Shown here piece by piece: positions 14,635 to 39,337 of a stretch of DNA of 64,000 bases. Both the position numbers and the translations under genes were made by a program. Numbering within the stretch: the stretch's first letter is position 1; the number at the start of each line of letters is the position of its first letter. Origin of the DNA: Magallana gigas. Its lineage: Eukaryota. A model generated the notes under the pieces. The model had not been told where the DNA came from and did no database searches. It saw only the letters and a program-made list of their open reading frames with translations. The stretch spans positions 11,594,001-11,658,000 of the forward strand of contig NC_088858.1 of assembly GCF_963853765.1 (NCBI RefSeq), in the 5' to 3' direction.

Positions 14635-17600
14635 CATCGTAATTGATGTTTCCGTCTTTGTCCATTTCAACTTTCGATAGAAGATCCTTCATTTCTTCAT
14701 CAGATATTTTATCATCAAATGACGTAATTAGGTGTTTGAATTCTGGTTGGCTGATGACACCGTTGCCATCCTGGTCATATCTTTGGAAAGCCTCTTTTAT
14801 TTCCGTTTCAAACTTATTCGGATCCTGATAAATATCTTTCACTAAATTTAAAAACTCCGAAAATTCTAAGGATCCGTTCCCTGTATAAAATATGATTGAA
14901 CAAGTCTGTAAAGTATTATAAACACCAAATTTAAAAAAAAAAAAAAAAATGATATGAAACAGACTGTGAAATTGTAAAGTAAAAGTATATAACTATTTCG
15001 TCAAGTTGTACACATGTGCGTTATTCTTACAGTCATATTCGATATTTTCATTGTGAAATCATATTTCAAAAGATCTATCAAAAATAATACCGGTACATGG
15101 TTGTGTTAAGCCACCTTACGGCGATACACAGGGCAACCATGTGCTTACGATTTCTGCATCAATGTTTCTAAGATGTATGAATTTTGCCCCAAAAAAAATT
15201 CAAGGTTCTGGAGTGTCGTTATTTGGAGGACGAAAGAGTTTTACTATGTGTTTTATTTTTAAAAACCGAAAGGCTTATAAAGTGACTTAAAATACGCCAA
15301 ATCCATCAGTTCAAAATTATTTCAATATTTATGCTATGTTTTGCTTGTTTAATGTTGAACCATATTGTGAACTGATCAATGATGTTTCTAAACAATTTAC
15401 AACCAAACGATCGAACCAACTTTCTCCAAACAGGAATATTGTTATTCTCTTACATTACATAGCCAAAGATTTACGTCATCTATATTAATAACATTGATGA
15501 GAAGCGGATATCGTAAAATTCAACAATTTAAGGAAGGTTCATTCAGGATCCCTTATTGCATGGATTAAAAAGAACCTGACCGAAAGACAAATAAAGAGAA
15601 CCTTGGTACATACATATGTCCTTTCTTCGTATCAAATATTAATATACATATTTTATAGAAACCGATGTACATGTAATTCGATCCCAGCTTGGTAGTTCCT
15701 GTATGCAAACGTTAATGATTCTACTGCAAATATATTCAGTCTAAAGAATATGTCATGTTTGATTTTCTAAGTGGGTAAATGTTAATAATTGACAAGCCAC
15801 GTAAAATCATTGCGCTTTGTTGAGTGACTGATAAGGGAGGCACTTTTCCAAAATGTAAATGCCAACTAATAACTTTTAAAAAGAATTATCTTTCTTGTAT
15901 CACAGAATGAACGTAGATTAATTCCACAGGCACCTGACGTTATAGAATTTTCTTATAATAAAATACAATTAACGTTACGTCATATTTCACTTAACTTCAT
16001 GAAGGCTATGTCAATTTGCCCTGCAAAAAAACCGTACCGCAGTTATTAGTATGGGGTATATATTTTTAATTCTGAGAAGAATAACGTCATTAGCCTGTGA
16101 TTAATACCGTTATGATCGACATCATTGATGATGTCCTGTATCTGGGACGTGCTGGCGTTCTGCCCACACGCACGCATCACTCTCTTCAGTTCCCCGGCGT
16201 CAACTGTACCGTCGCCATCGTGATCACAGGCGTCAAAAGCGTCACGTATTTCTGAAAGAAAAAAAGTCCTCATTGTTTATACGATGCTCATATCAGTAAA
16301 TTTTGTAATTATATATTCAATGTCCTTTAAGTTGTAATATGACTGTTGAGAACTCAAATACTGCCGTCTCTTAACTTTAAGTATAAATCTACTGTATCTG
16401 TACTGCATTGATTACATAAATGTTTGTTATAAGCTCACACGAACCTAAGCTTCAAGTGAGGCTTTTCTGATCCATTATACCTTTTGTGAACGTGGAACTA
16501 AAATTTAACGTGAACTCATCTCTGTTTTATGGGAAAATCTTCGCAAGAACTACAAAGCTACAAATTTTTTAGATTAATTTGCAAGCATCCTCAGATAGTG
16601 TAGACTCTTATCAGGCCCATGATCATAAAGTTGATGTATTTTACAACCTTAGTTTTTCGCTCACCGAAACGAAGTCAGGGGGAGCTTATGCTATACCCTC
16701 GGCGTCGGCGTCCGGACCTGGTTAAATTTTTGTTGCAGGTCCTGTATCTAAGCAATTACTTGTCCTATCTTCACCAAACTTGCATGGATGATGCATCTGG
16801 ACCTACTTATGGACTTGAAAGACTTGGGTGCTGAATCTGAGTCCTAAATTTCAGATGCTGGAGGAGGTTAAGGTTGTTGGACCAGGTTAAAGTTTTTGTT
16901 GCAGGTGCCCTTTGATAGCAATATCTAAGTTACTGCTGGTCCGTACTTCACCAAACTTGCATTGATGGTGTGTCTTATAATTCTGATGCACCAGACAGGC
17001 TTGAATGCTGAATCTGACCATAGGTTACAGATGCTGAAGGAGGTTAAGGTTTTTAGAGCTGGTTAAAATTTTTTGATGCAGGTGCCCTCTGATGATTATA
17101 TCTTAGTTACTACTTGTCCTAACTTCACCAGACTTCCATGGATGGTGCGTCTTATGATACTGATGCACCAGACAGGCTCGAATGCTGAATCTGAGCCATA
17201 GGTTTCGGATGCTGGAGGAGGTTAAGGTTTTCTGAGCTGGTTAAAGTTTTTGAAACAGGTGCCCTCTGATGATTATATCTTAGTTATTACTTGTCCTAAC
17301 TTCACCAGACTTCCATGGATGGTGTGCCTTATGATACTGATGCACCTGACAGGCTTGAATGCTGAGTGTCTGAGTCTGAGCCATAGGTTTCGGATGCTGG
17401 ATATAGTTAAGTTTTTTGGAACAGGTCACATGTTTTATAGATAATAGTACTATTTGAAACTTGCATAGTTGATTAAACTGTAATATGAATAAATCACAGA
17501 GGAAGCTTCAGATGCAGAGCCTGATCTCCATTATCAGGGATGCTAAAAAATATATCTTAGTTATTACTGGTCCTAACTTTACTAAACTTGCATGGATGGT

Positions 17601-20600
17601 GCGTCTTATGATACTGATGCACCTGACAGGCATGAATGCTGAATTTGACCCATAGGTTTCGGATGCTGGAGGGAGGTTAAGGTTTTAAGAGCTGGTGTTT
17701 TTGGAGCAGGTGCTCTCTTATGATTATATCTTAGTTATTACTGGTCCTAACTTCACCAAACTTGCATGGATGATGCATCTTATGATACTGATGCACCTGG
17801 CAGGCTTGAATGCTGAATCTGAGGCGTAGGATTCGGATGCTAGATGAGATTTGTTTTTTTGGAACAGGTCACATATTTTATAGATAATAGCTTGCTTAGT
17901 TGATTTAACTATATTATAAATGAAACGCAGAGGTAGCTTCAGATGCAGATCTCCATTATCAAGGATGCTTAAAAAATTCAGAAAATCTAAAAAAAAAAGA
18001 AAATCTCAAACCTGCTTGATAGGCGTGTTCGTTGTTAAATGATATATTATGATTTCTATGATATAGTATTGTATGATATGATACACTATTGTTTTATATG
18101 ATACAATATTATATCATATATCATTGTAAAAAGTTCTATGATACGATATGATATTGTATTAAATTTTTTGTACATTATGATATGATATTGTATCATGATA
18201 TTGTTATGTATAGAATTGTTTATTATGATACAATATTGTATAATATAATATTGTATAATATACTATTTTATCACATGCTATTTCATATGATATTGCAACA
18301 TACAATATTGTATCATATGATATGATATTATATAATATATATTGTATCATATGAAACGATATTGTATAATATAATATTGGTTTATATAATGTATTGTTAT
18401 ATCATATGAAAATGTATTATATGATATTGTATAATGTGATATTGCATCATTTAATACAATATAGTTTAATATGATATTGTATGATATAATATAGTACTAT
18501 ATCACATGAAATTGTATCAATAGATATAATACAATGTTGTATCTAATTTTATTGTATCATTTAATACAATATCCTATCATGTATCAAATATACAATATCA
18601 TACAATACAATATCATACTATAATATTATACAATATAATATCATATGTTACAATATTGTGATGTATTGTGTGATATAATATTGTATCATATATTATTATA
18701 TTGTTTCATATAATATCAATATCATTATTTATTATGATATTGTATTATGTGATCAAATACAATAATGTATAACAAGAAACAATGTCATATTATATGTTAC
18801 AATATCATATTTCATCATTATTTATTACAGTATTTTATTGTAATATATGATATATATTGTAGGTATCATAGGATGCAATATCGTATTTTATATTATTGTA
18901 TTGATAAACATTGTATCATATAATACCCTATGAAATGAACATATGATTATTATACAATTTTTTAATATATGATATTGTTATACGATATTGTGTCAAAACA
19001 GTATCCATGTATATCCAAGATCATTATTAACTATGATTTTCAAATAATATGATAAAGGTGGTCTCATAAAGGTGATTCCTCAGAAAGGTGATGCCTCGTC
19101 TCGGTGAGCTTTGTAATCTGTGATTACCTATGTTTATTGTATCTTTATTAGTTAGTCTGTAACAGTGCCTGCCTTTCACTTTGGATTTATTTTTATTCAT
19201 TTTCTAGATTTGTTATTTCATACGTTGATGCCGAGGAATATTAAGATTGGTCAGTTGGTGCATCTTAGCTCTTAGAATATGATGTTCCATAAAGTGAGAT
19301 TCAATGATCTTTTTGATTTAATATAATTATTGTCTTGGAATATATGAGAACCATTGTGAGTTTTATTTCTAAAAAACAAAAATTGGGGTTTTTAAGTTGA
19401 GCGATGTGGCCCATGATGCTCTTGTTTCAGTTTTTTCTTATGCACGTTGCTTTGAGTTACACCTATGCTTCGAACACTGTACATAAATGTATTTTATCGT
19501 ATTAGAATCTGAATGTAGATACTGCCATAAGAAGCTTGGTTTTTAAAAAGCAGACTGAACAAACAAGTTTGTCCCAGAGAATGTGAGGAAGTGTTACCAT
19601 GAATTGTTTACTCTTGGTCCAATTTAGGACAGAAATATACAGCAATCGACCAAATGTAAAGACATATCAGCCGCAAGATAATAGTGTTCCGTCCAAAGAA
19701 ATTGATGCGTGTATTTCAGAAAGTAAAATTGTAGTAATAAATATTCATTTAATTCTGAATTAGTAATTAAAAAGGAATAATTTTTTTTTTTATATTTCAT
19801 TATTTTTTTTATAAATAAGATGTATAATAATATTTTATTTATTAAAAGTTGTTTGTCTTGATCATTCTCAAAAGGTCTTTTTCTCCTAGGATTCTGTTTA
19901 TTTCCTTATGTTGGAGTTCGATATTGATGTTCAAGATCAAGTTGAGAAAGGCTAATTAAAAGACCCACTTCATCTCCAACATATACACATGTAGTTAATA
20001 ATTTCAACCAAACAATGGGGTGATTGTGATAATGTAATTTCAGGTGTTCTGGTATTAATTTCCGAATAACACACTTTATGTGTTAATGTGTAAATCAAAC
20101 ATAATGCAGAATGCACAGACAATAACCGTAGTGTGAAATATTCCTGTTTCTCTTGAACAAACAGGGTTTTGTTCCCGCCTTTGTTTAACTGTATCGAATG
20201 TATTGGTAAATAATATCTACTAAGTGGAACTGTGTATAAGAGGGAAAACGTGTCAGAGTTCAAAGAAAATTAATAATTCCAAGATTTAACACGGGACAAA
20301 GAAACAGTATGAAATGGTAAATTAAGGCTTTGGTTTTAATCGATTTTACTATATTTTTAATAATGTCTCATGCATTTTAAACAATACTCAATGTGTATTC
20401 TTTACCGGTTTAAAATTCAGTTACAGCACGTGATGTGTATACATATGATAAATAGTATGATATGTATTAATACATACACTTGTGTATGGTTTTTGATTGA
20501 ACCAACAAAAGATATATAACTTTGAAACAATGATTTCGTTAAAATACATGGCTGTCGGTCAGAGTGAGAGAGTGTGTGTGCGTGTTGTGTTCTATAGAGA

Positions 20601-21168
20601 GAGAGAGTTTGTGTTCTAGTACAGTATATGAAACATAACATTGAATAAAACTTAGAAATACCTTCGATCTGTCGAGGAGAGAGGTTTTCCTTTTCAGAGC
20701 TCTGAAATCAATTTGAGGTATTGCAATTTATTTCACCAAAGGTTAAAGTTCTTTAAACATTAATTGCATGTATGTTTCTAAATTTGCCTGTAATGAGCTT
20801 TAGGTAAGCCAACAAAATGTGTGGATACATTGCTTGCATTACAAGACGCGTCTATCAAATAAACTAAATCTTATTTCTATAAAAATGATGAAATGAATAA
20901 GGTTTTGATATTCTCAGTCTTTAAAGTCCTTATAGATACTAAAATAAGTTTACAGAAAAGCACAAAAAAACCAAACATTTCATGTCGAATTTTTTATCGT
21001 CAAAGTCTTTCCAATACGCACCGATTCCCCACTTTTGAATATAATTTGATAAGTATCAAAATCTATCAAATATAATATTAAATAAATAAAATGAATGAAA
21101 ATATTTCATAATATAAAAAATTACATGCTTTTCTAGTTGTAGTATATAAAAATGTCTGATCTTACCAT
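14635..21168 (-). CDS. Calmodulin-like gene A (4 EF-hands); last exon uncertain
   Basis: Exons 21166-21168 (ATG|GTAAG), 20662-20701, 16108-16251 (144 nt), 14635-14880 (246 nt), all GT-AG with compatible phases. Protein MSSEKENLSPRQIEEIRDAFDACDHDGDGTVDAGELKRVMRACGQNASTSQIQDIINDVDHNGNGSLEFSEFLNLVKDIYQDPNKFETEIKEAFQRYDQDGNGVISQPEFKHLITSFDDKISDEEMKDLLSKVEMDKDGNINYD... A candidate last exon is 9896-9909 (DFIK*). Read-through gives GMY* at 14624. Confidence 0.85.
16430..19425 (+). mobile_element. Older degenerate Helentron-type (HINE) element hosting the younger element at 16651-19116
   Basis: 5' piece AAGCTCAC...TCAAGTGAGGCTTTTCTGATC at about 16430 and 3' piece TGAGCGATGTGGCCCATG..CTCTTGTT at about 19398-19425 resemble termini I recall from oyster Helitron-N/HINE families. 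Confidence 0.5.
16651..19116 (+). mobile_element. Composite Helentron-type non-autonomous element (HINE), copy 1: ~177-bp satellite array + AT-rich array, in gene A intron 2
   Basis: 5' TTTT-GCTCACCGAAACGA pairs with 3' subterminal TCGTCTCGGTGAGC (13/14 inverted match), followed by hairpin GTAATC-TGT-GATTAC. GATGCTG(G/A)AGGAGG markers at 16854, 17030, 17208, 17393 give a monomer of about 177 bp. An ATATGATATTGTAT-type array spans 18040-18990. Confidence 0.85.
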
Positions 21169-24100
21169 GTTTAAGTGCTTCCCTTCTTTGGGCACTTTAC
21201 TTCTTGGGACTTTACATTAATCGATCACATACAAGATCGACTCGATACAGGAAAGTTTACCAGCACTTTGGCTCCTTTTCCGTTACAAAAAGGTCAATTT
21301 AAGGTATTTCATTGAATTGAAGAGTTTTATTAACAACAATGGGTGTTGATTAAGCACTTTTTATGTTATTATGCTGAAATCCTTTATAAATGATAAATTA
21401 TAAATGATATCTTTAACCTTTTTTTACAGAACTACACTTCATTTACAGTGATGTATTATACACTGTCAAATATTGCAAAAATAAACAAACTACTAGATAT
21501 ATTGAGTCTATATATATTCTTTAATAATATATAATGTCAAGGAAAATAATGTTATCAAATGGCTGGTGTTCTAACCACTTAACCATTTCAGTCACATCAA
21601 AGTAGTTATTTGAATTCTATACGCGACTTTGACCACGAATATAAAGACTTGTACAAGTACTACTAGTATTTTCCTAAAACGTTCAAGTGTTGGGATACAA
21701 AACGATATTTCTATCTTGGGGTTTTTACTCCATGTTTTTGTTGATTTAAAATAGTTCGTTTTCCGTTATACCTTAATAATATGGAGCCCACAAAACAGCA
21801 TGCTGTTCTTATGATCCGTCAAAACTGAACTTGGTTCTCACCAACCAACCAAACTCGTGCCATAAATCTGAACTCGTCTGTCATCGTAGCTGAAGTTTTA
21901 CTAACCGTTTTCGAGGATCTTTGGTAGTATTGTGTATTTTCTTAAAGATTCGAATATGTCTTCCATGGAAGGGCTGCTTCAGTAGAAGCTCCTCGAGTCT
22001 TTATGATCTGTATTGTTTTTATGATGTTTAACGTCCGGGCAAGAAATTTAACAAGACTCTTTGGCCGTTGCCGTTTTGTAGTATGCTTTACCTCCGAACA
22101 ATTAATAGTTTAATTAATTTAACCAATATAAAATATGGTTAGTAAAGGATGCAAATTATTTTTCCTTCATCAATATGTATTAAGTGAAGTTTAAGTGCAA
22201 TAAATTAAAAAAGATGAATCAATTGACCGATCATTCAAGACCCGGTCTCCATACTCACGTTGAGTCGCGGATCGTCATCAGAGCAAGCAAATCAAAGGTC
22301 TTCAAAGTCAGGATGCTTTGCTTTTACGGACCGCCCAGGTGCCAATACTCAAATGTTTTCACTGAGTGTTCGCAAATAACGCTTTTGAGAAACATCAAGG
22401 ATACATATCAATTTACGGGGAAATGATTATAGAAATCTTAATATATGTTATTAAAAACAAAATGATAATAGCCAAATGGACAAAATGTGTGAACGTTCGG
22501 TCTGCTATAGAAAATAAAAGGTAGACTAAAATAACAGTTCTCTCAATATTTGGAATTCTCCTATTATGGAATTTATCACAGGTAGTTTTTTTGGCACTAT
22601 AGAATCAAATTTTGTGATTAAAATTAATGAAAGGTGCATACTAGTAATTTTTATAGTAGTAGTTCATACCCAATCCAGTCTATAAGTTATCAATATATTC
22701 ATCAATTTTCAAAACAAATTGCTTCATTCATCAATTTTCAATACAAATTGCTTCATTCATTTTAGCTTACATGAGTAATATACATCAATAGCTTATTTCA
22801 TCAATGTGCAGCTTTTGCCGGGTTGCTGTATGCTCGGTGACTGTTTAGGCCCATGGGCCTATATTTATGAAGTAAGGTGATAAGCATATGTATGTACCTC
22901 GAACTCATCAATGGATCAAATTTATTTTCAAACAAATTATGTGAAATAAATGATTATTTCTGTTATCATTTAATAAGCAATTTTTGGATGACATAGAAAA
23001 TGATACTTGCCAAAGTTGTCTTGAAAAGGATTGTTAGTCGGTACGTATTTTTACAATATATGAGTCCGTTTCTTTTTAAAGTGATTTTCCAACTATTCTA
23101 TGTCAGATTTATATGAATTTATTTATTTTCTGATTTTTTATTGTTTAGAAAAGATACAGGTACCGTATCATAAAGATTTAAATTTTCAATTGTTTAGCCA
23201 AAAAATCTTTAATTTCAATTTATATATGTAATCCGGACTTCACTTTCCCCTGCAATATTTCCGTTGTCTGATATTGAGTTATTTACCCTTGTCGGACGTT
23301 CAACACTCCGTTTTTCCATTAGCAATATGAGGTTGGTTGCAGAACATGTCAGTCAATCGATTTAATCAATTTTGGAAGAGACACCACCGGGTCGAACGTG
23401 TTTATTTCGGGATAGTGTTGCTTGTTAAATGCTTTTTTCTGCATCAGTCATCTTCCAGTAAATTTCAATTTAACGCAAAAAACAACCTTTTTAACAAGAG
23501 TAATCAATTTTCAAAGTGTTCAAAGTGCTTTATGACGAAACTTTATTTATCCTTTACCTACAGTGACGTAAATAGTTAAAAGCTATACATACAGTAGGAA
23601 CATCATTATGTACACTGGCATATCTTGTGTAAAGACTGCACAAGAAAGACATTGAAGCATCGTTTAATGATGGGTTTGATTTTTTTTAATTCATATACTA
23701 GCTCAGTACCGATCAATATGGCTTATGCTCTTATCATAATTTTTTTTATATTTTAGAGGCAGGATCAATTGTTCTGAAGGAAGTATCTAACGATTTCTTA
23801 TAAACAATCAGGTTTTTAGAGTTCCTATAAACAATCTACATACATGAATGCATACATACACTCTACATTTATTTACGCTCGTTTTTCATATTTTCTCTTC
23901 ATTTTTGTAACTGTTATTGAACAAATTGAATTTCCTTCTTTACCAGTTTGTATTTTTTAAGTGTCCTGTCAATAAATTTTTTATAAAACTTCTTGACAGC
24001 TTTGGGCAAGTCTTTTCATTTAGTACACACATAGATTTAGCATTTCTTTTGTCTTTTGTAATCAAATTCTAAATTTTACGCGTAAAAACTTTGTATAATC

Positions 24101-24291
24101 AACTACAGATCATCATACTCATAACAGACCTAGAATAGACAAGTAAAGATTAAGTCCTTTTATATTATAATATGAATACATCCGTTATAAATTTTGAGCC
24201 CTTCACATTAGTCTATGCTCTCTTCACAATAAATAACAAAATCACCGAACCAATATATTTGGTCCATATTGCACATGTTTTGTTTGCTTCT

Positions 24292-25155
24292 TCAATCCGC
24301 CGAGAATCGCTCATTCAGGATCAATGCAAACTCTGCAAAAGAAAGTTAAAAAGCATAAACTTCACTTGACAACGCATCAAATAGAAATTCGAAAACTGAA
24401 TTCATTAAGAGCAACTCTCTTGAGACTATTTAGTTTCCTCATGTGGAGAAAGGTTGATATTGAAAATTGAAAATCCAATCTCAGATAAAGCCCGGCCTTG
24501 TATACTTAAGTCGTATATGCAGAATATCAATACATATTCCATTGTGTATGATTACATAAACTATTTTCATACGTACAGAATTTCATTGTGTATGATGACA
24601 TAAACTATTTTAAAAGTAGCACGGAAAACCTTGGGATATTAATACAGATGATAATAATGTGTTGTAAATTTTGAATTTATCGAGTAATCAAGATCGATAG
24701 TGAAATTATACGGAAATATATATGTCGTAAATTTTATTGTATTTCGAAAGAAAGTACGTCACAAAATGGAGGAGTGTAATATCTCCTTAAGACTACATGT
24801 ACATGTAGAGCCATACCTTCGTAGTTAATTTGTCCGTCTTTGTCCAAATCAGATTGGTTGAAGAACTCCTGCAAGTCCTCGTCACTGATGCTGTTCTCTC
24901 CTCGCTGTAAAATGGACTTGGCCTCATCTATTGTGATGTAACCACTGCCGTCCTTATCGAACACCCGGAACGCCTCCTTCACCATGGACATTTCTTCATC
25001 CTCGGACCGGAATTTAGAGGGTGCATATTCCAGGAACATCTCGAACGAAATCTCACCGGTTCCTACAAATTTTTAACATAAATATATTCTTTTATCGTAA
25101 CACTCACAAGGAGTTAGGAAGTTTCAAAATTTCAAATCTAGGCCGATAGACTTTG

Positions 25156-25220
<65 letters not shown>

Positions 25221-26294
25221 ACCCTCTGGGTCCAGGTCCACGAGAAATTCCTCTAGCTCCTCTGGTGTTGGATTTTGGTTCATAGCATGGAGGAGACGCT
25301 CCAATTCTCCGGCGTCGATCACTCCATTACCGTTCGAGTCAAACATGTTGAAAATCAACTTCATTTCTAAATCGACACATAAATGTATTTTTAATCACTG
25401 TTTAGTTAAATCATCCATATTTAAAATAAATTATTTTTTTATCGTAATGGTTGCAATTATTTTCAGATCATCAATTATTGGTATACCTCGAAGTTGCTCT
25501 TCCGTCAAATGCTCAGCCTAAAAGAAGTAAAAACTGTATCAATATTTGAAGAGATTTCATATCATTCAATGTGTGTTTTTACCCTATATTGTACATGCAT
25601 GTATATACATTTTTACAACGACTACATTGTCGTTTTTAAGGTTTACATATGTACATCAAGCCATAATTTTCCACGTTAAAGGTACATATACATGCATGTG
25701 ATTTTCATATTATTCTCATTCTTGTATAAAAGACAATACAGAGGAGTGAGGGTCAAACGTGGCTAAATTGATTAAGTTCCAAAAATGTTTGTATATGAAA
25801 TTTGAAGTGACCCTCTGCTGTGTATTTAACTCAAACGTCTCTGAGTTTAGACAAATTTGAATGACAAAAGTGAGTGTTTACTCGAAGGCAGTGGACAAGA
25901 ACCGTGTTTACGTTGTTTGCATTTTACCCTGAAGTGTTTCACTAACGGCAGAAACTAGAACATCTAATGATGTACTTCATTTATAATGACTGAGTTTTCT
26001 AAAGAATTCTCTTAAAATGATATGCTTAAAAGTAAAATAGCTCAATTACTAAAGCAACTAGATTTAACGAGTTATAAATTATGCCTTGTGTAGATTCTTC
26101 CTTTTAGGTTTCATAAATCTGGGTTTTGAAATACCATGCATGAAGAATTGTCAGCAAACCATCGAAACAAAAAGCGTATCGGAGTATCGATTTCATCAGG
26201 AATATTTTTTAAAAGTATTTTTGTTTGTTTATTAATTGATCCCAAATTACTTTTGCTTAGCTTTAAGAAATAAAAAGAATAATACTCTTACCAT
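24292..26294 (-). CDS. Calmodulin-like gene B, 154 aa
   Basis: Exons 26292-26294, 25487-25517 (31 nt), 25223-25366 (144), 24817-25062 (246), 24292-24332. Protein [154 protein letters not shown]. Confidence 0.92.
25159..25216. repeat. (TC)n microsatellite in gene B intron 3
   Basis: Seen directly; on the minus strand it abuts the splice donor. Confidence 0.95.
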
Positions 26295-29206
26295 GTTTGG
26301 TTGCAAAATCTCTCTGGAGGAACCGGTGACACTAACTTTCTCACTTAGTAACCACTATACACAGTTGTCGTCTGCAAGTGACGTCTCGCTCCCGCCTCTC
26401 TGGGATCTTTAAGAAAAACTCTCCGTTAGAACCGATTCTTGATTAGTTAAATGATCGGAGCTATTTTCTCAGGTTTCTCTTTCAAAGCGTTTTGATTTTT
26501 CGATTTAAAAGGTGCAGAATGCTTCGATAACGGATATTGTACATAAGTGTGTTCTTGGAAGCGTTGAAGACCAATGTTCTTTGTAATATAATGATCTATC
26601 ATGAAAGCTAGGGTCAAGTTTTTAATCGCAGTAATAACATTGTGTTCTATAGGATATGTTTACATCAAAGATCACTGGTTGTAATAAAGGTATTCCACAA
26701 AAGTGGTGCAATTTCTAAGCTTAACTCTGAGGTTCCGTATTTCACCATTTAGTTTTATTTGGTGAGGCTGTTGTTTCCTGGACTGGAATACACCATACGA
26801 CATTGGTCACAGTTTTAAGAAGTTCTCTAGAAATCCTTCTTGATTAACCATCAGATGAAAGCGTTACAAAGATCACAAATGTTTGAAACTATATGTAGGG
26901 TCATCCACCTTGATTCCATTAAATGTAAACATTGAATCTATAACGAGAAGTCGCAAAAGGCTTTGTTCAACTGTGGAGTTGTTGCCATTCTTAAATTAAT
27001 TAGATCTATGTGCATGAGTTAATAATTTGTATATAAATCTTTGGAGTATATTGTTAATAAAACATGTTCATTTTAATATATGGAAATTCTTCTATTTAAT
27101 TGCATTCCATACATTGTTGAAAAGTAAAGGAGTTACATTGTAGAGATTCTTAATCCAAGGCCCCTGATGAGCTAGCGTGTCTAAATATTTTTTGGGACAC
27201 CTTCTTCAAAATAAACTCCATTCATTGAGCAAGATCTTTGTAATCAGACTAACCTTAAATTGAGTCTTTAATCCAACTATGTTCCTAGAAAGTACATAAG
27301 AGAGTGAATGAATGTTTAGCACCCATCGATTAATGAGTTCAGATAATTAGGCAGTTTAATTTCCTCGTAATTGGGAAGTACAGTGGGTATGGAATTGAAA
27401 ACAAATATCAGCCTGTGTTTGTTGATGCCCGAATCTATATGGTCAGTAAGAATTCAATTTACAATATTAGCAATATTCTTTGCTATTGATCATGACCCTA
27501 CACGTATCTCCTACGACACACTTTTATACCTGAAGCTTATGTTTCACGCCATGCAGGTACATGTATAGAAATCAATCACGATCTCTATCGGTCATTGCAA
27601 ATATTTTTCATGCTCGCAAAGGTCAATCCAAACTTTAACAGAAGGACTGAATTTGTTGTACTCGTCTATATTTGTGATAAGTTTTATTGACAAATTCGTG
27701 TTTCACGTACAGTTTTATCACGAAGTTCCATTGCATGTCAATATAACAATGTGATCATATTCCATGCATGTGTTTTGTACACTTTACATGATATATAAAT
27801 CATTCAACCTGTGAATAATTGATTTACTTGTGCTTTAATGACATTCCATAACTTATTTTCCATATACGCTATCGGAAGTATTAGGATATCTTAATTTGTG
27901 TTGTTGTTGTTTTTATTTTTTGCTTTAATAATCTTCATCATCAATAGTTGTTTAGAGGTCAACTGAAGAGAATGATTAATTAGTTTAATAACAAAGCAGG
28001 TATACATGTAGATCGCAACATGATATCCGAGCCACAATGGGTCACGCTGTGTTAGGAAACGTTTCACTTATTCACTAATTGGTTGACCCCCTTTGCGTTC
28101 ACTCATTCATTCGTTTGTTACACCAATTTATGGATTATATTTAAGATTGTGTCATATGAAGTCTTCTCTAAATAAAATCATGGTTGAAGAAGATTTATTA
28201 GGCTTTGTGGTTAAAATTGTTTATTCGACAATATATTCAAAATCTGATATACTTTAATGATTTCTTTATACAAATGTCCCTGTGAAAAATGTATTGCTTC
28301 AAGCAAAGCTAGCCCAGCAAATATCAGCATCAATAATGATTAAATGTTTACCTGACCGTCCCTTAAACTGAAAGGGGTGGGGTGGTGGGTGTCATCTTAA
28401 TAATGAAATAATTTCTTTGGTGATTCATGAGGGTAAGAAGGTAGCGACAATGGTAGAAATAATACTTAACCCGCGTCAGCGGATGGATGTTAATTAGATA
28501 CCATGATACATGTACATGTATATAACTCCAAACAATATAGGAAGAGTGGCTCTGTAGCCCCTGATGCGTTCCGCCTTATTATAAATAGCGCAATTTGCTA
28601 TATCTAATAGGGACGGGTGCTTATTCTTTACTTATTGTCGTATGTTTGCGTACCGGATTAACTAGACTAAAGTTAACCACTTTAGGATTGTGTTATTTAT
28701 TTACTTTTACATTTAAACATAATGATAAACTGAGCAGAATCAGGCAAATGAAGTTCAAATTAGCTTTGTAAGGAGAAGGACATTCTTTTAACCACTGCAT
28801 GTAAATAATTAATGCTTATACGATACCAAAAAAAATATAACAAACAACTTCATTCAAAACAATGATATATTTTTATTTAGAAAATAAAAATGTTAACAAA
28901 TATGGTCAAAAAACGAATCTGAAGTAAATCAAGAGAACATATTCTTTTTCTCTTACCGCACTATTAATATCCAGAGCAGTAGAGAAAGTCACCAGAATCA
29001 TAAGTATATGTATTTTAGCTAAAGACATTATTTAGTATGACTTCACCACTACTTTTAACCTGGCTTTATTTTTAAAAACAACCTCGCCTAAAAGTTGTTT
29101 ATACTAATGGATCTTTTCTTCGTTTGAGAATACAAATTATTAATAAGAATTTTCCTTCAGAACTCGACGTTCAATGTGCCCAGTAGGATGTGCAAGAGGA
29201 GGAGGA

Positions 29207-32200
29207 TTAATCTTGCATCATTCTTATAAATTCTGAAAAAGAAAACGTTTACTGTTAAGATTTCTAAACACAGTTGGGACCTGTTTATTCCATTGTATTC
29301 GTAACCTTTATTGTCTTGTACATTCTTAAGTATATACGTTACATTTCTAGTCAATTTAACTACAGTCAAGGGCAGTCTATACCAGCATAGACCATATATT
29401 CGTTTATGTACAACCACATTATCTCATAAATATATACTTCATATCTTATATATCTGTCTGTGCGTGACTCCCCGTCTTTTATAATATTATATATGTATAA
29501 TCAGTTTTACCAGCGCAATGCAACTGTATTTTTAGTAGACTTTACCATTGCAGTTACTATGTCCGTCTTCGTGAAACAATAGTCAACTTTAGAATCAATT
29601 CATATAGTCTTTTTGTCATTGTGTATCTTCAATTTAGTATAGACTTTACATACATAATAATCTCTCTGTCTTTACAGTTGACTATAGACTTTACCTATAT
29701 AGTCAACATTTCCGTCTTTACAGTTGACTATAGACTTTACCTATATAGTCAACCTTTCCGTCTTTACAGTTGACTAAAGACTTTACCTATATAGTCAATC
29801 TTTGCGTCTTTACAGTTGACCAAAGACTTTACCTATATAGTCAACCTTTCCATCTTTACAGTTGACCAAAGACTTTACCTATGTATTCAATCTTTGCGTC
29901 TTTACAGTTGATTATAGATTTTACATATATAATAAATATTTCCGTCTTTACAGTTGACTATAGACTTTACCTATATAGTCAATCTTTCCGTCTTTGTCGA
30001 GATCGGCCGTTTTGATCATATCCTCCGCCTCTTCTTTTGACAGTTTATCTCCTAACCTCATCATTGCCTCTTTAAGTTCATCAGCATCAATTTTACCGCT
30101 ACCATCTTTGTCAAATAATTTAAAAGCCTCCATCATTGAACTATTGGCTTCTTCTGCAGATTTATAGTGATCGGCCATGTATTTTTCAAATTCTTCGTAT
30201 TCTATTTTGCCATTTCCTGAAAAAGAAAAAAAATGGATTTTACAATACATGTTTTATCACTTACTAAAAATAAAAAACTGTTTTGTATTGGAACTTTTAT
30301 TTGAAAAAATGAATACGCAATGATCGTTTTGTTTGGTATTAGAATGGGACGGAACTATACAGACAAGTGCATGTACGAGCATGCAAAGAAAAAACCGACA
30401 GTCGTTAACACTGGTACGCTTTCCTGATGCAATCGGCATGAAGCATCACTCTCATATCTGATCATAAAAAAATATTTGATGCAATTAGTAAATAGCAACA
30501 GACACATATGCCTCCAATAACATCTTCAGTATTACAAGAAATATTGACAGTTGCAAATATGTGTGTAAAAGTACAGTAGTATTTAAAAAAACGTCAATTA
30601 TTTTTTTTTTATAAAGCCGAGAAAAAATATTTTAGCCGATATTCACATTTCGTTGTTTCTTTTATTTCTAAATGACTGACACCATTGTTGATAAACAGGT
30701 CATGGGCAACGGAAGTTCGGAACATTCAGAGCTTGGTAAAGCTAGTTCAATTTCCTGCCCATTGGAATTTGCCTGATAGCGCTCTATTGAGCGACAATGT
30801 TGTCTGCCCCCAGGGAGGCATTTCTTAATTAAAGTCAACCATAGATCTATTGTTCAGAATTAATATTAGGTTTATAGCTAATTATTTATCGTAATAACAT
30901 GCCTTTCATTCAATGCTAATGTGCATAAGATTTTTTATAAGGATTATAAAACATAATGTATTATTTAGGGAGATTGGGAGGTAAGCAGTTGGCAAGTACG
31001 AGTCATTTCTAAAACATGTTAAATTTGTCTCACGTGTCACAGATTACATCTTAGCAGAAAAATATCTATATTGAATTCTATTATTCATCTGTTACCTCAT
31101 CAGCAAACTTTGATACGATGATAAAATAAAAATAAAATAAAAATGGTCACGACCAAACGGCCGCCTTCAGACGCTGATTACAGTGAGGTTACTTAAGAGA
31201 GGCGGACGATACCATTGGTGTCCAGTTCCTGCATTAGATGCTGCACCTCGGCCTTGGTTGGGTCCTGTTTGAAGGCCCGCATCACCGTCAGAAGTTCCCG
31301 ACTGTTGATATAGCCGCTACCGTCTTTGTCAAACAGCTCGAACGCCTCTCGGAATTCTAAAGAGAGATGTGTCGTAAAGTGGTAGATTAAAAGCTTAACT
31401 GTTCGGAGTAAATATCAGGCATTGCTTCGTATACTAACATAGTATCTTTCTATGAGAAACATGAAACAGTAATAGAAATGAAATGTCAATTAAAGAAAAA
31501 ACTACCAACTTTGTCAAATAAAAATTAAATTCATGATTCAGCAAAGGATAAACGCAAAGGCGAAATTTTACAAAAGAATACTAGTATTTTGCATATGCAA
31601 TAAGAACTGGAAACACCCATTTTATATCAGATATATACCGGTATCTATTTTTTTTTAAAATTCTTTTCAGTGGTCAATAAGACATCGGAGTACATATTTA
31701 CCAGTGATCAAGTAGCAATTTTCTTTGACAAAGTCAACACTGTCTAAATAAATGCCATTTACAAAGATACTCAAACATCAACCAAAATAGGTACACTTAG
31801 AGGCCCTATTTGGATTGATCAATGCATTAGTGTACGCAATCCTTGATTAACATCCTTAAAATCACACTTCCATTAAAGCCTATAAATTCTGAAATTGTAT
31901 ACATGACTTTAAACCATAATGATCTGATCATTTAGAAATGTTTTTATTCATCCCACATTATACATCAGAAACCGTGTCCTGTGTGAAAAAGAATAGACAT
32001 ATTGATCTCTTTCCCTGATCCCTGAACACCTATGAATAATTACTATTGAAAAAGCTTTGAGGTTCGTTTATATTTATATCATTTAGCATCAGTAAACATT
32101 TCAGCTGAAATTTCACAATCAATACCATATCAGGAATCCCGTTTTCCGTGCCAAACGCTAGAGTTCTGATTTAGATCATCTAGCCTTATATTTTGGAAAA

Positions 32201-32410
32201 TGTTTCAAGTTTTAATGTAATTCAAGATGACACTTACCTTGTTTTATTTCCTCTGGTAACTTACTCTGAAAAAAAAAATTAAAAATGCCGGTGTAATTAT
32301 TACCGAAAAGAAATCAGATGATCGACTACACTGAATTATTCATTGAAAGTAAAAAACTTGATCCCTTGTTTGGGTCGCTGGGACCACTGTACCAAATTTC
32401 CACTTACCAT
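29207..32410 (-). CDS. Calmodulin-like gene C, 148 aa
   Basis: Exons 32408-32410, 32238-32265 (28 nt), 31213-31356 (144), 29971-30216 (246), 29207-29232. Protein [148 protein letters not shown]. Confidence 0.94.
29669..29990. repeat. 7 x 46-bp tandem repeat spanning the exon 4/intron 4 junction of gene C
   Basis: TCTTTACAGTTGACTATAGACTTTACCTATATAGTCAACCTTTCCG units start at 29669, 29715, 29761, 29807, 29853, 29899, 29945. Confidence 0.95.
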
Positions 32411-33504
32411 GCTGTATCATTGGAGTGGAAGGGAGACACACACACTCGCCGTCAGAGACCAGACCGGCTCTGATCGTCCTACGATCAATTCACCAACGTT
32501 CCACGTGATGGTTGTAGCAGTAGGTACAGACGAACGAGTCCAGTGATTTCAAACGTGACATTCAACCAAGGTATCACTTACAGGAATTGGGCTGTATTGT
32601 GGAACTTGTTTAATATTGATGGGAAGGATTCCATTGTAAGGAACACTTATTTTCTGGGACTCTTGATGCATTAAAATCCTTTTAAATATTATCTTTATTT
32701 GAAACGGAAAAATTTATTCATGAAGAAAAATCGGTGAAATCACATAAATATTTTCTTTGTAAACTAGCAATTCCGGTAAGAAATCTATAAACTATGTTCA
32801 AGCGGAAAATACTTGCTGCACAAAAATATTAACAGAGGATGAATTTTTTATAGGTTCAGTGCGATATTTTGATATTTAGGCGAGGACAAGGGGGTGGAGC
32901 ACCTTCGGTATTTTAGGGCAAACTTTGCTAAATATAACTGTTTTCATAAATGCTCGTTCAGTTCATTCTACCAATAGAAGAAGAACTCGGAACATTTTGA
33001 AGTAGAAATGAGCACATTATCATTTACTTGATAAGACAGTCTGTGGGACATAATGTTAAAATGAAACTTAAGTGTGTATGTCTATACATGTATTGGAATT
33101 TTTGTACATTGGAATATTTGAGCATGATAGGGATATGTTTTAATTTTTGGGCCATTCTGTACGCATTGTCACTCATTCTTTCTTTCTTTCGGAGATTGAC
33201 TCACATAGTAATTTTTATATACCAGTAAACATTGTAAAAGCAAACCACAATTTCTTATTGTTTAAAAGACAGTACACAGATAAATGTATCTGTACACTTA
33301 TGCTTTGATTAAAAAAAAAATAGATATATGTTATTTTAACTCGACCAACCTTGTTGATGGAATTCATGAAAAAGCAAAGCAATGTCATATTATATATAAA
33401 TTTTGAATTTACCGGAAGGCAGTTAATACAAAATTTACAAAATGACAACTTTACAGCCGCCCGGTAAAATCAAAATTTAAATGACAGTAATATAGGTTAT
33501 AGTT

Positions 33505-33876
33505 ATATAAATAGTGCCTGTTTGGGAGGGTAACAGTTGAAATTGACACCCCGAGAAAACCATTGTCAACCGACGCGAAGCGGAGGTTGACAATGGTTTT
33601 CGAGGGGTGTCAATTTCAACTGTTATCCTCCCAAACAGGCACTCTTTATTTTGTTATACTGAATGTCTTTTTTAAAATTTTTAAGAAAATTTTACTGCTT
33701 TTATATAGGAATAACGTGAATTCTACAGCGAACCGTACGCGCATAATTTTCGCGCATGTAACATTTTTTAATGTTACCCGTTGCCAAGTGCGTTGCTAAC
33801 GCTGAGGGTAATAGTAAATATTATTAACTGCGTCTTAACCAATCAGATTTCAGTATTTAACATGAAAGTATAACAA
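33505..33876. mobile_element. Fold-back non-autonomous element (Crypton-like design), copy 1
   Basis: Near-perfect arms of about 60 bp at 33513-33643 around GACGCGAAGCGGA. An inverted second copy lies at 41785-42792. The superfamily assignment is recollection only. Confidence 0.75.
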
Positions 33877-34515
33877 AGTAATATATCAAATAAGCTGGGA
33901 GTGTTGTTTCGTTTTTCGTATTTTTTAAGGTTATTTTTTCTTGTTTTGTATTTTAAGAAGAAACTAAGATTTCCTTCACGTTATACCTACTATAGTATTA
34001 GTTGATTAACGGCAGTTGACAATTCTTCCATAGTAGTAAATCTACATTTGCAAGAGCAAGTTAGGTGTAAAATACATGTCAGCTCTGATTAAATAAACTT
34101 CATGAACACAGAACAAGCTATGTTTTCTCTTGTTTTATTACAACATATATGCGACAAAGATCAATAAATAAACTTTCTGTTAAATTTATTAACAACATAG
34201 TAAGGTACATTATACATTGTATATGTACATGAATATCTAACTTGGAATCTCTTTGTTAACTTATTGCAAACATACATGTAAGTTATTTTGTTACAAGTTG
34301 TTAAATATCTGAAAAATGTATTATTTTTTACAAAATAATATAGTGTCATTTACAAAGTAAAAGTAATTGCATTTTTAAGAAAAAAAACCAAAGGTATGAA
34401 CAGCTGCATTATTTCCGGATTGTGTAGTAAGAGTTCGGGAAAATTTTTGTCACGGACGGATGTTTGTGATATCTCCTTCTTAGCTGCCGATGGCCTCGGA
34501 TACAGACACATTCTT

Positions 34516-37500
34516 CTACTTCATCATGATTTTGACAAATTCTGAAAAAGAAATCGCAAATACTCAGGGGACGTACATGTATAACAAATGACTGAATAAA
34601 AACTATATCCATGAAAAAATATTATAAATAGATGTCGATGCTCATAGTATGCTGTTGTCTACGGGTATTGTGATATTATTGTTTTATGATGGATACATTC
34701 ATTTATTGGTTTGTAGTATTCTTTATCAGTTAATGAAATTTGTTATCTATTATAAAAAGTTATGGTTTTAAATGTTTGAGCCATGCATGGATAGTTTGTA
34801 TAAAATTGTACCACAGCATATCATAATTATCCTATCTGCTTTAGCAATCTTGTCTTTTCGCTTATTGCTACTAACATACATGTATAGTGTCAAATAAATG
34901 TACCAAGACAAACCAAAATAGTCTACATTGCTGTCAGTACTTAGATCCACTCCTTTCGCGCCTACCAAAATAACCTCTTGCAATGTAGGCTGGAAGTACT
35001 TTGATTCGCAAATGTAACATTTACTTGAGAAGTCATTTGCAACTAGTACCTTGATCCGCTCTATTAACATTTAACGGAATAGTTCAATTCGCTGTCAGTA
35101 CCTTGATCCACTCCCGTAGCACTTACCGGAATAGTCCACTTTGCCGTCAGAGTCTTGATCCGCCGCCTTGATCATTTCGTCCACTTCCCCGTCTGTCATT
35201 GTTTCCCCCAAACTTTTCATCGCATGCCTCAGCTCTTTGGCATCAATTTTTCCACTTCCGTCCTTATCAAAGATTTTAAACGCATTTCTCATTTCTTCTT
35301 CAGCTTCATCTGGACTCTTGAATTTATCGGCCATGAATTTTTCGAATTCGTCATATTCTATTTTTTTGTTACCTAAAAAAAATACAGCATTCTAATCAAA
35401 GAAAATGTTCCAGGTAAAATATTTAACTTGGCATGTAAAATTGATGTCAATCACAGTTACTGTTTGTAATTTGATAAGTCACGGGAAATTATAAGCAAAT
35501 TCACATCCGTCTTCATCTTCGCTAGCCAAGGGTTTATGGGGAGCAAAGTGGACCGAAAACCCTTGGCTAGCGAAGATGATCATCTTCGCTAGCCAAGGGT
35601 TTTCGGTCCACTTTGCTCCCCATAGTGGACCGAAAACCCTTGGCTAGCGAAGATGATCCGTCTTTCATTTACACATTCTTATACTAAATCCAATACCAAA
35701 AAGTGCATATGATATACACTCTAAATCATAGCTTTAATTTTCTTTATGACATTGGTTTTCATCTCTAGTAATGTTATTTTTTAAAATGGTATAACAAAAG
35801 TGATATCGGGTTTTGTAGATTGAAACATGAGATACAGAACTTTGACCTAACCAAGATTTACACAATATATCAAACTGAAAACAAGAGAAAGCTGTCAATG
35901 TGACAGCAAACTGGGTTTCCCTTTGTGTAAACAGTATCCATAATCCATTTGTCAATTAAAAAAAATCAAAGTACCATGCTTATCTCAAAGGTGCATATTT
36001 GAACAACTGAAATGCAAATAACTTCCTATCTTGAAAACTGTAGGAGTTATCTGGACAAATGATGCACCCTGTATGCAATGTTATGGAAAGAAAGTTGTTC
36101 AAAAGCTGGCGTTTTTCTAAAAAAAAATTCACGAAAACAAAATACAATACTAGTATACACATCTAGCATATATGTACAATTGAACTGCAAAACAAAACAG
36201 TTGAACAGCTAATATTTGTTTGTGTTTTAATAGAAATTAAATCAAAGTAATGAGTACATTTCATATATATATATATGAACAATTGATCTGCAAAAGAAAA
36301 TCTTCCTATCCTAAAAACTGTAGGTGGGGTTATCCGTACAAAGGTACACTGTATTTTTGGTATTAAAAATCAAAATCAAAGTAATAGGGACATATCTGAT
36401 TTATGTACAATTGATCTGCAAAACAAAAACGTCCTACATGTATCTTGAAAACTGTAGGAGGACCTATCCGTACATACAAAAGGGTACCCTATTGGCAGTC
36501 GCCCGTCTAACCGCCATTTTCGCCATTTTAATAACCGGATTTTTCATACGAAAAACTCGGTTAAAAATCATTATCCACAGTATCATAGAGATGATAATTG
36601 TTCTCATTGCAGACATTATTCATATTAATAAAGGATAACATCTTATAAACGAAGTTTAGGAAACCCTACAGAAAATAAGGACGTTTTTAATTTATACATG
36701 ATGGTCGTGCAATGAGTGTATTCGACCAAAAACGTTTATTTTAGTCGCCAAATATAGATACAGTTGCCATGCATAAAAATATGTTATTGAATGAATTGTA
36801 ATTTAATTGCTGTTTGGTGTTCTTTTCATCTTGTATATTCCCCGCCACACGGGGACGGTACATAAAACATTAGATACAGTAAAACACGCTTACCGAAGCG
36901 CGATAATTTTGATTCATCAAAGGCGGTTTTCATATATATATCTATTGTATTTTAATAATACCGCTATATATCTACAAAAATTAAAACTGATTTCGCTCTA
37001 TGCGTAAATTCATTATACATGCACGTTCGATGAAGCCGAGTTTACTGTAGTTTTCCGGGCGGCACTGTTATAAATACGGTATACCCACCGTTTTTGTCCA
37101 GTTCTGCTATCATATCCTCGACATCCTTGTCCGTGGGGTTCTGCTTCAGGGTCTGTAGGACGGTTTTCAGCTCGGCGGCGTCAATGAACCCACTGCTGTC
37201 TTTGTCAAACAAATTGAAGGCAGACTTGATATCTAAAACAACCGCAAATAATTTTTATCTTATTTTCTATTGAGGTGTCGCACTAGTTCTACTGTCCTTT
37301 GCAAAACTTTGAATTGTTTAAAATCAAAATTAAGTTACATTGTACGTAGCAACGAAGATTTTGATTTTAAAGAATCTAAGTTTTTGCCGTTACAAACTCA
37401 CAACTTGCGTGGTGATGGTCATATTAAAATTCCATCACGCAAACTAGGTTAACCGTATCTGATTATGTTTGGTTTAAAGTTTTTGGCATTTTCTAACTTT

Positions 37501-38700
37501 TGCATTATTTATAGTGATAAACTTTAATATAAAAATGTGATGACACAGCAAAATAAGTATACCTTCTCTCTGTGAATCCGTTATTTCACCCTGTAATGTA
37601 AATAATGCATACTTAGCAAAATCACAAGGGACACGTGTTTTTTTAATCATGATTAAGTACATGATACATACATAAGTACAATATGTACCATCATAACCGT
37701 TGAACGTTCCTGTAACAGTTATCTCTTATTCAACAAATCAAATGCAAAAATATTCTAAATGAATGCGAAAAGTGGATAACAAACCAATATGTTTTTCTTC
37801 ACCAGCGAGAATTTATCTTGAATACTCGTATAATGGAATTAATTCATACAACAGCAAATTTCAACATTAAGGATGCTTGTCAGGGAGTCAGATTACAACA
37901 AAATATAGTCTCGCTGGGACGATATCATTTAAAAATTAATATTGTTATTCTTTCCTAGCGGAAGTTTGTTTGGCACTTTTCTATATATTAGTATTTTGAC
38001 AATTCCAGTGTTAGGAATCCTTCATCGTTTTATGGATTTATAGGATCTTATTCTAGTGCCCCACTAGTTCCCAGCATACTTGTATTGAATGATCGAAATT
38101 TTAAAGCAAATAGAAATGAAAATGTTACACAAGGGGTTTAAAAGGATCATGGGAACTTATTTTACATACTTCAGGGTAAAATAAATGCATTCTGACCATC
38201 CATTGATCGGGATTTATCTGATTTCGAATTACACTGAGAACACCCGTGTCCCAATGTCTTGTGCAGTGATTATCTACTGGTGTTTTAAGAATCTGTAGTT
38301 AAACGAAACACGGTGTACTGTAAAGTGCATTTAATTTTTGATGTTTCATGTTTTCATGCACGAAATCATTCTTTCAAAATCTTTCAATTATGGTGATTTT
38401 GAAACGTGTATCTCTGTACCTGTATAACAAAGTACATTGATACAATTTTTGAATGTGCATGGTTATGAAAATAAGCCAGGGTCCAAAATAAAGATTAATT
38501 AATTTAGCCAACGGCACATTTATTAAATGCATTGTAATTAATTTCCAGTGAACTGCATCCATAGTCAAGTTAAACGAATAGAAACAGAAATAAAACAAAG
38601 GTAAAAAAAACTATACACATTCTGTTATGTATGTATAGACAATATCTGCATTAATGTTTTAATAGCACAAATCGATGTTTAGTCCTCAAACACTTACCAT
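34516..38700 (-). CDS. Calmodulin-like gene D, 148 aa
   Basis: Exons 38698-38700, 37563-37590 (28 nt), 37089-37232 (144), 35127-35372 (246), 34516-34541. Protein [148 protein letters not shown]. Confidence 0.94.
35514..35655. mobile_element. 142-bp palindromic MITE with 22-bp TIRs and 9-bp target duplication, in gene D intron 3
   Basis: TIR CATCTTCGCTAGCCAAGGGTTT. ATCCGTCTT flanks it at 35505-35513 and 35656-35664. A perfect 90-bp palindrome occupies 35535-35624. Confidence 0.85.
35879..36568 (-). mobile_element. Helentron-type (HINE) element with internal AAACTGTAGG..TATCCGTACA repeats, in gene D intron 3
   Basis: End AACAAGAG..GCTGTC..GACAGC hairpin at about 35879-35908. Repeat motif at about 36028, 36307, 36441. 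The other end is AACCGG...CGGTTAAAAA at about 36533-36568. Confidence 0.6.
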
Positions 38701-39337
38701 GTTTGTGATTCTGGCCGCCAAAGGAAAGATCCGGAGAGACCACGACTAGAGGCAACACAAACAGAGCTGGTCGTTACTAAGATCCACTATCTGTGTGCTG
38801 ACGCGATTCGATGAGTCGCGGTTCTCAACCCCTGGGAGAAACGCGGCATTTAAATCTGTTTAGAAAATAAAGGGGGTTTTAAACAAGGCATGTTCTTGTT
38901 CATCGGATATTTCTACATAGCCGATTTTGAACAGAGCTTTTAAAGTCATAAAAGGAATCAAGCTTATATATCGAACTTTCTTTTTTTTTATTTTTTAGAT
39001 GAAAAGGAAAGAAAAACATTGGAAGTACATATCGATCGTTATTTGAACAAACTATTTCAATACATATCATTTGTGGCATACAGAAAATAGAAAACACGAT
39101 TATAAATTTGAGCGAGCGCAGAATGAGAATAATTATACCTTTGTTGTACTAACTCTGTGCAATAAGCATTTATATTGACATTTGCACATAAACCTGTAGA
39201 ATAGCGAAAACGAGCTTTTTCATAACGTCACAATTATCATGACATGCGCTTATCACTTGACGTTTGGATTATTACATAAAATCTCGCTAATTTTAACAAT
39301 TCTGAACCATTAACCTTTTTCATATGCAAATATAAGT

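Follow-up and report, generated by a model that had tools for sequence, protein, structure and literature searches.

Evidence for a tandem array of four divergent calmodulin-like genes in the oyster Magallana gigas

The calmodulin (CaM) genes of abalone have five exons, of which exon 1 encodes the start codon only and exon 4 is intron-less; the same arrangement is found in the sea squirt, and the published molluscan CaM gene structure includes an exon 3 of 144 nucleotides (nt) (PMC6171432). A CaM-like protein of a bivalve, CaLP of Pinctada fucata, has four EF-hands and belongs to the shell-formation literature (cited in PMC5379566). The locus described here lies in a 64,000-nt stretch of the Magallana gigas genome (NCBI RefSeq assembly GCF_963853765.1, contig NC_088858.1, positions 11,594,001 to 11,658,000), referred to below as the window, in which an initial annotation had noted a group of CaM-like genes. 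In order of increasing coordinate the genes are called A, B, C and D, and all positions are those of the window. We put the probability at about 85% that these are four distinct calmodulin-family paralogues in tandem, each encoding a protein with two lobes and four EF-hands, which lie on the minus strand and are transcribed in the order D, C, B, A.

Exons were found across the whole window by a six-frame scan for EF-hand loops, followed by extension of the reading frames and location of the splice sites. The scan returned eight loop matches, all on the minus strand and grouped in four pairs that correspond to the four genes. All four genes share an exon 3 of 144 nt and an exon 4 of 246 nt, each bounded by AG and GT; exon 2 measures 40, 31, 28 and 28 nt and the short terminal coding exon 29, 41, 26 and 26 nt in A, B, C and D, respectively. 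The frames are uninterrupted, with canonical splice sites. The predicted protein of B has 154 residues and those of C and D have 148 each; 153 residues are obtained for A with its candidate start codon. Pairwise protein identity is 33-39%, apart from C and D, which are 52% identical. The initial annotation had described four CaM-like genes on one strand, with shared exon sizes and proteins very unlike each other, and this description held in the EF-hand-loop scan, at the AG/GT sites and in the identity values, with the strand now fixed as minus. Two details were corrected. An exon 1 contributing only the ATG had been proposed for all four genes, which RNA confirmed for B, C and D and which is a candidate in A; and the proposed range of 14635-38700 was too short for A, in which exon 5 is coded at 10111-10139, 4.5 kb below the start of that range.

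The exons are listed in the direction of transcription. Contigs L031 and L054-L059 are from RNA, and UTR denotes an untranslated region.

38698..38842, minus strand: D exon 1, 5'UTR ending in ATG at 38698-38700, then GTAAGT; contigs L057-L059.
37563..37590, minus strand: D exon 2, 28 nt; splice sites and RNA contigs.
37089..37232, minus strand: D exon 3, 144 nt; splice sites and RNA contigs, with a loose RNA end at 35373 that continues into the end of exon 3.
35127..35372, minus strand: D exon 4, 246 nt; splice sites and RNA.
34119..34541, minus strand: D exon 5, coding 34516-34541 (26 nt) plus 3'UTR; joint 34541/35127, contigs L057-L059.
32408..33302, minus strand: C exon 1, 5'UTR of at least 895 nt ending in ATG at 32408-32410, then GTAAGT; run X1 contig.
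32238..32265, minus strand: C exon 2, 28 nt; run X1 joints 31356/32238 and 32265/32408.
31213..31356, minus strand: C exon 3, 144 nt; splice sites and run X1 contig.
29971..30216, minus strand: C exon 4, 246 nt; splice sites, and spliced to exon 3 in the RNA contig from run X1.
29207..29232, minus strand: C exon 5, predicted, coding part of 26 nt; the acceptor is strong, and the encoded C-terminal peptide resembles that of CaM and is kept in the Saccostrea cucullata orthologue.
26292..26487, minus strand: B exon 1, 5'UTR ending in ATG at 26292-26294, then GTAAG; contigs L054-L056.
25487..25517, minus strand: B exon 2, 31 nt; splice sites and RNA contigs.
25223..25366, minus strand: B exon 3, 144 nt; splice sites and RNA contigs.
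24817..25062, minus strand: B exon 4, 246 nt; splice sites and RNA contigs.
23529..24332, minus strand: B exon 5, coding 24292-24332 (41 nt) plus 3'UTR; RNA contigs L054-L056.
21166..21168, minus strand: A candidate ATG at the end of exon 1; the sole ATGGTAAG-type candidate (ATG then GTAAG/GTGAG) between A and B.
20662..20701, minus strand: A exon 2, 40 nt; L031, with a 40-nt counterpart in Saccostrea cucullata.
16108..16251, minus strand: A exon 3, 144 nt, EF1 and the start of EF2; splice sites and L031.
14635..14880, minus strand: A exon 4, 246 nt, with the linker, EF3 and EF4 after the second half of EF2; AG/GT, joined to exons 3 and 5 in L031.
9601..10139, minus strand: A exon 5, coding 10111-10139 (29 nt, ending in KLLYGN and a stop) plus 3'UTR; RNA contig L031, predicted acceptor.

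Spliced RNA was obtained for each of the four genes. For D, the contigs L057-L059 are orthologue contigs from a close relative (91-97% identical) and hold the full five-exon mRNA; the joint between exons 5 and 4 was found in run X1 and in 17 (X21) and 26 (X22) raw polyA RNA reads, and the strand data fit minus-strand RNA. For B, three contigs from three runs span the 5'UTR with its ATG, exons 2, 3, 4 and 5, and the 3'UTR. The full models of both genes are identical to RefSeq records, XP_034326096.2 (P0225) for D and XP_065943740.1 (P0238) for B. A 1313-nt contig from the metatranscriptome run X1 joins exons 4, 3 and 2 of gene C to its long exon 1 (ATG|GTAAGT). For A, the 1008-nt contig L031 (Logan, ERR12311762) joins exons 2-3-4-5 exactly, and its positions 469-1008 align to 10140-9601 with 99% identity; the 5'-most 26 nt of this contig had no match in the window or the genome. 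The RNA level of D was well above that of C in the runs examined. Two Logan-derived proteins were longer than these models, P0022 (gene A product) at the N-terminus and P0035 (gene B product) at the C-terminus, and both extensions were rejected as artefacts in which TGA was read as Trp.

Several local sequence features were recorded within the genes. The 4.4-kb intron 2 of A contains, at 16757-17365 and 18057-18745, a 177-nt tandem repeat (3.4 copies) and AT-rich 15-20-nt microsatellites (GC ~25%). A perfect (TC)29 microsatellite at 25159-25216 takes up more than one third of the 160-nt intron 3 of B. The C-terminus of B carries an in-frame 9-nt indel polymorphism (24292-24310): the window and RefSeq end in Ser-Ala-Asp, the RNA contigs in Ser-Pro-Glu-Ser-Tyr-Asp, and C. 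angulata in Ala-Glu-Ser-Tyr-Asp. At the end of exon 4 of C, a 46-nt tandem repeat (29638-29995, 7.8 copies, 88% match) has a unit composed of the last ~27 nt of the exon and the first ~19 nt of intron 4. The exon-4 donor ATAG|GTAAAG recurs about six more times in this repeat, giving possible decoy donors, and each copy has an in-frame TAA. The repeat is missing at the same place in Saccostrea cucullata.

Comparisons with solved structures and domain families placed the proteins in the calmodulin family. The best 60 structure matches of D, B and A were all calmodulin, over the full length (E ~1e-34 to 1e-39). Pfam EF-hand_7 matched two stretches each in D, B and A (E 1e-30 to 1e-37) and both exon peptides of C. 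EF-hand_1 matched four stretches in D, three in A and three in B, and the counts in A and B agree with degenerate loops in these proteins. Gene C alone of the four has four canonical Ca2+ loops. In D, position 6 of EF2 is Lys instead of Gly; in B, the Glu at position 12 of EF2 is lost and replaced by Met, and the B orthologues are degenerate there too; in A, positions 1 and 12 of EF4 are Glu and Ala, the Ala also in C. virginica. In an AlphaFold2 model of D (mean predicted local distance difference test score, pLDDT, 81), which comprises eight helices as well as four loop bridges, the central helix is broken at residues 76-78, the Lys-Ser-Pro of the linker between EF2 and EF3.

The canonical calmodulins compared, the near-canonical copy L010 of the same oyster genome and CaM A to CaM D of abalone, have the same two lobes, four EF-hands, five-exon structure and intron phases as the array genes. 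They differ from these in sequence, since the array proteins are 39-57% identical to oyster CaM over exons 3-4, have a linker one residue longer and include some degenerate loops. The highest identity to any oyster CaM-type copy over exons 3-4 reached 57% in D, with 43% in A and 39% in B, far from the near-invariance (>90%) of canonical CaM. The molluscan CaM-type structure (five exons, an ATG-only exon 1, an intron-less exon 4 and the phases) was found with RNA in B, C and D, and in exons 2-5 of A. Other CaM-like copies in M. gigas show the same layout. The exon layout, which the initial annotation had listed as common to the four, is thus no special mark of the array and is the inherited CaM gene structure.

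HMMER alignments of D, B and A with solved calmodulins placed one single-residue gap in the linker between EF2 and EF3, and MAFFT agreed; the loop spacing is 26 residues in A-D versus 25 in canonical calmodulin, which corresponds to the exon 4 of 246 rather than 243 nt. The extra residue that had been proposed is thus real. To what extent it is general was examined in the 564-Mb genome with gene D as query. At least 87 exon-level matches were obtained, and exon 4 could be defined in 42 copies. CaM-like clusters were located on C6, the contig that contains the window (8.5-9.0, 10.4-10.5, 11.6, 30.9-31.1 and 39.2 Mb), C5 (3.46-3.57, 8.86 and 45.2 Mb) and C7 (14.3 Mb). Exon 4 is 243 nt in 20 of the 42 copies, L010 among them. 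The spacing between EF2 and EF3 is exactly one residue longer in 17 of the 42, namely A-D and 13 others, and longer by one or more in 20; these copies are on C5 and C6, at distances of up to tens of Mb. Because 20 of 42 copies have it, the longer linker, from which the initial annotation had concluded one ancestral duplicate, does not mark the A-D array. The additional residue is common in the CaM-like copies of the oyster and is lacking in canonical oyster CaM (L010).

Three copies at 30.93 Mb (L017, L023 and L024) have the same aromatic-Lys-x-Pro-Asp-Glu linker motif as D and A. Most copies of the 30.9-31.1 Mb cluster are nearer to CaM and have a 243-nt exon 4. As further observations on this cluster, at least 20 exon-4 copies lie within ~150 kb (C6, 30.93-31.08 Mb), and L017 and L023, 3 kb apart, combine a 141-nt exon 3 with the linker that is longer by one residue.

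In a tree of exons 3 and 4 of the 42 oyster copies (8 of which entered the trees without exon 3), C and D were sisters (support 98/93) and A and B paired weakly (91/61). With orthologues from C. virginica, Saccostrea cucullata and S. echinata added, each gene formed a group with its orthologues (A 100/100, B 100/100, C 100/99, D 90/50), and B joined C + D (88/70). The deep branching order is beyond resolution because only ~100-130 alignment columns are available.

These trees bear on the proposal that A-D form an exclusive clade, derived from one ancestral duplicate that gained the extra linker residue, so that the residue would be a synapomorphy of the array. The best 42-copy tree has A-D on one side of a branch, as the initial annotation had suggested for their origin, and the close relationship of C and D, and of B with both, is in keeping with it. 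The support for the four-gene branch is 68/34 only, however, and in the tree with orthologues A dropped into a polytomy and a clade of all twelve array sequences was neither recovered nor rejected (approximately unbiased (AU) test, p = 0.50). The distribution of the linker also counts against a synapomorphy, as the 13 copies elsewhere on C5 and C6 have it and L017, L023 and L024 share the tyrosine/lysine-proline-acidic motif. In a third tree, from which the linker columns were excluded, the long-linker state needed at least six changes; a single clade uniting all 20 long-linker copies was yet not rejected (p = 0.34). The other M. gigas CaM-like paralogues share the exon layout of A-D and, in some of the 13 copies, the proline linker motif, but they occupy different loci and form no supported clade with A-D. 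We regard an exclusive clade marked by the extra residue as possible, with the balance leaning against it. A broader idea is more doubtful still, namely that the long-linker CaM-like copies, most of them with a proline hinge and numbering at least 20 for exon 4, might be one old bivalve or lophotrochozoan sensor subfamily distinct from calmodulin. Within it, D-C-B-A would make up a conserved module, possibly under common regulation, whose members would differ stepwise in Ca2+ stoichiometry, with four, about three-and-a-half, three and three functional sites.

In S. cucullata, orthologues of C, B and A occur in that order on one strand, with an exon 3 of 144 nt, an exon 4 of 246 nt (A, C) and an ATG-only exon 1 in the C and B orthologues. 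In S. echinata the orthologue of D has matching exon sizes, and a further CaM-like gene comes after it. All four genes predate the split between Crassostrea/Magallana and Saccostrea because the orthologues and their order are found in C. virginica and Saccostrea. Between Magallana and Saccostrea, identity over exons 3-4 is 83% for C, 70% for A and 70% for D. Comparison with Saccostrea by YN00 gave ratios of nonsynonymous to synonymous substitution rates (dN/dS) of 0.10 for C and 0.12 for D, and a dN of 0.18 with saturated dS for A; dS was saturated in these comparisons, by NG86 likewise, and the omega values are rough. The tandem duplication thus took place before the Crassostrea/Magallana-Saccostrea split, and the order has been kept since under purifying selection. 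The view that the genes are old and maintained was upheld by the orthologue groups, the conserved order and a dN/dS of ~0.1 for C and D. A-D evolve under purifying selection yet change far faster than calmodulin, which is nearly invariant, while the array proteins keep 70-83% identity between Magallana and Saccostrea orthologues.

Word-based searches with A, B and D returned named orthologues in Magallana, Crassostrea and Saccostrea only, which is no proof of absence elsewhere. A library protein search with D gave mostly multi-EF-hand proteins and one close representative, from Saccostrea echinata (71%); no other single-unit match exceeded 56% identity, the level of CaM itself, and the search says little on relatives outside oysters.

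A-D would be expected to act as cytosolic CaM-type Ca2+ sensors. By analogy with the family, Ca2+ binding would open a hydrophobic pocket in each lobe and the lobes would clasp target proteins; the copies may have diverged in the number and affinity of their sites, and presumably in their targets. The extra linker residue, usually within a proline-containing motif, probably makes a permanently broken, flexible hinge with the same mode of action. A hinge rather than a new mechanism is expected because the central linker of calmodulin is flexible, and small indels there are tolerated.

Several points count against the interpretation of the region as four separate, working calmodulin-family genes. 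Gene C is weakly expressed, its depth being about 1 at most in the two polyA runs and reaching 16 in a single contig, and its exon 4-5 junction was not seen in the RNA runs examined. In the L031 contig of gene A, a TGA lies in frame upstream of exon 2 and EF1 is preceded by no ATG, which leaves the start codon of A as a candidate. The dN/dS values are rough, as noted above. Finally, the Ca2+ binding, target binding and cellular location given for A-D are predicted from sequence alone.

Troponin C, of the same EF-hand superfamily, was not among the best 60 solved matches of D, B and A, and the linker of vertebrate troponin C is longer by three residues, as opposed to one in A-D. The myosin essential ('sulfhydryl') light chain belongs to this superfamily as well, and the name "Sulfhydryl light chain" is the automatic UniRef name for D; the best matches of D, B and A are calmodulin, and three or four loops are canonical. 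CaLP of Pinctada fucata has an extra C-terminal tail, unlike A-D. Nothing in the analysis linked A-D to shell formation, a role that the initial annotation had raised.

The public annotation of these genes has been inconsistent. Older RefSeq names were "calmodulin-like" and "calmodulin-alpha-like", and the name "calmodulin-like protein 12" was given to models built from A-D exons that are chimeric fusions of neighbours: XP_034326096.1 (476 residues) fuses D, C and B, and XP_022331785.1 of C. virginica (479 residues) fuses pieces of D, C, B and A in the same order. An older model of C. angulata, XP_052699652.1 (360 residues), is also fused. The genes are already public in RefSeq and UniProt, and our models of B and D match existing records. 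Literature searches with the accessions, with 'calmodulin-like protein 12' plus oyster and with CgCaLP found no paper on A-D.

The fused models suggest an alternative in which A-D are modules of one multi-calmodulin polyprotein gene of the 'calmodulin-like protein 12' type and the single-unit models are artefacts, and proteins with several CaM units were indeed present among the database matches. We consider this very improbable. A separate 5'UTR exon that closes with the ATG is present in each of B, C and D, and the RNA contigs hold complete single-unit open reading frames with a stop and 3'UTR (stop and 3'UTR in A, B and D); these separate 5'UTR exons, stops and 3'UTRs are evidence against the fused "protein 12" models. 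The fused models also omit terminal exons or add non-homologous joining peptides, current RefSeq gives D and B as single units, and no contig bridging two units was present among those listed from the RNA runs.

That A-D are decaying, unexpressed duplicates is the least likely reading: the paralogues are highly divergent (33-39% identity), EF2 of B and EF4 of A are degenerate and the start codon of A is a candidate only, but spliced RNA was found for all four genes, the frames are intact and the splice sites canonical, the exon lengths are the same in the orthologues of three other oyster species, dN/dS is ~0.1, and the loop degeneracies are common to orthologues and therefore old and tolerated, so that this pseudogene reading, which the initial annotation had named as a possible refutation, is already contradicted for B, C and D.

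Between C and D lies an element (33396-33995) at which the RNA depth of both strands runs into the thousands in each of the four runs. It has many joints of the 'opposite strands' and 'goes back' kinds and loose ends at 33503 and 33876, and it resembles a dispersed repeat that has inverted ends, is highly transcribed and belongs to neither gene.

The A-D array is a real but fairly ordinary paralogue cluster of genes already in RefSeq and UniProt, and it introduces no new kind of biology. It documents an annotation hazard, in that the same exons were released as a fused "calmodulin-like protein 12". Oysters hold a very large CaM-like expansion, with at least 87 exon matches from a search of the M. 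gigas genome with one protein, and in the literature searched the old, maintained sensors of this expansion had not been sorted out from recent copies. The array illustrates the old kind clearly, with four paralogues whose order is kept across oyster genera, strong purifying selection and differing loss of loops. As such it could be a test case for the functional divergence of Ca2+ sensors.

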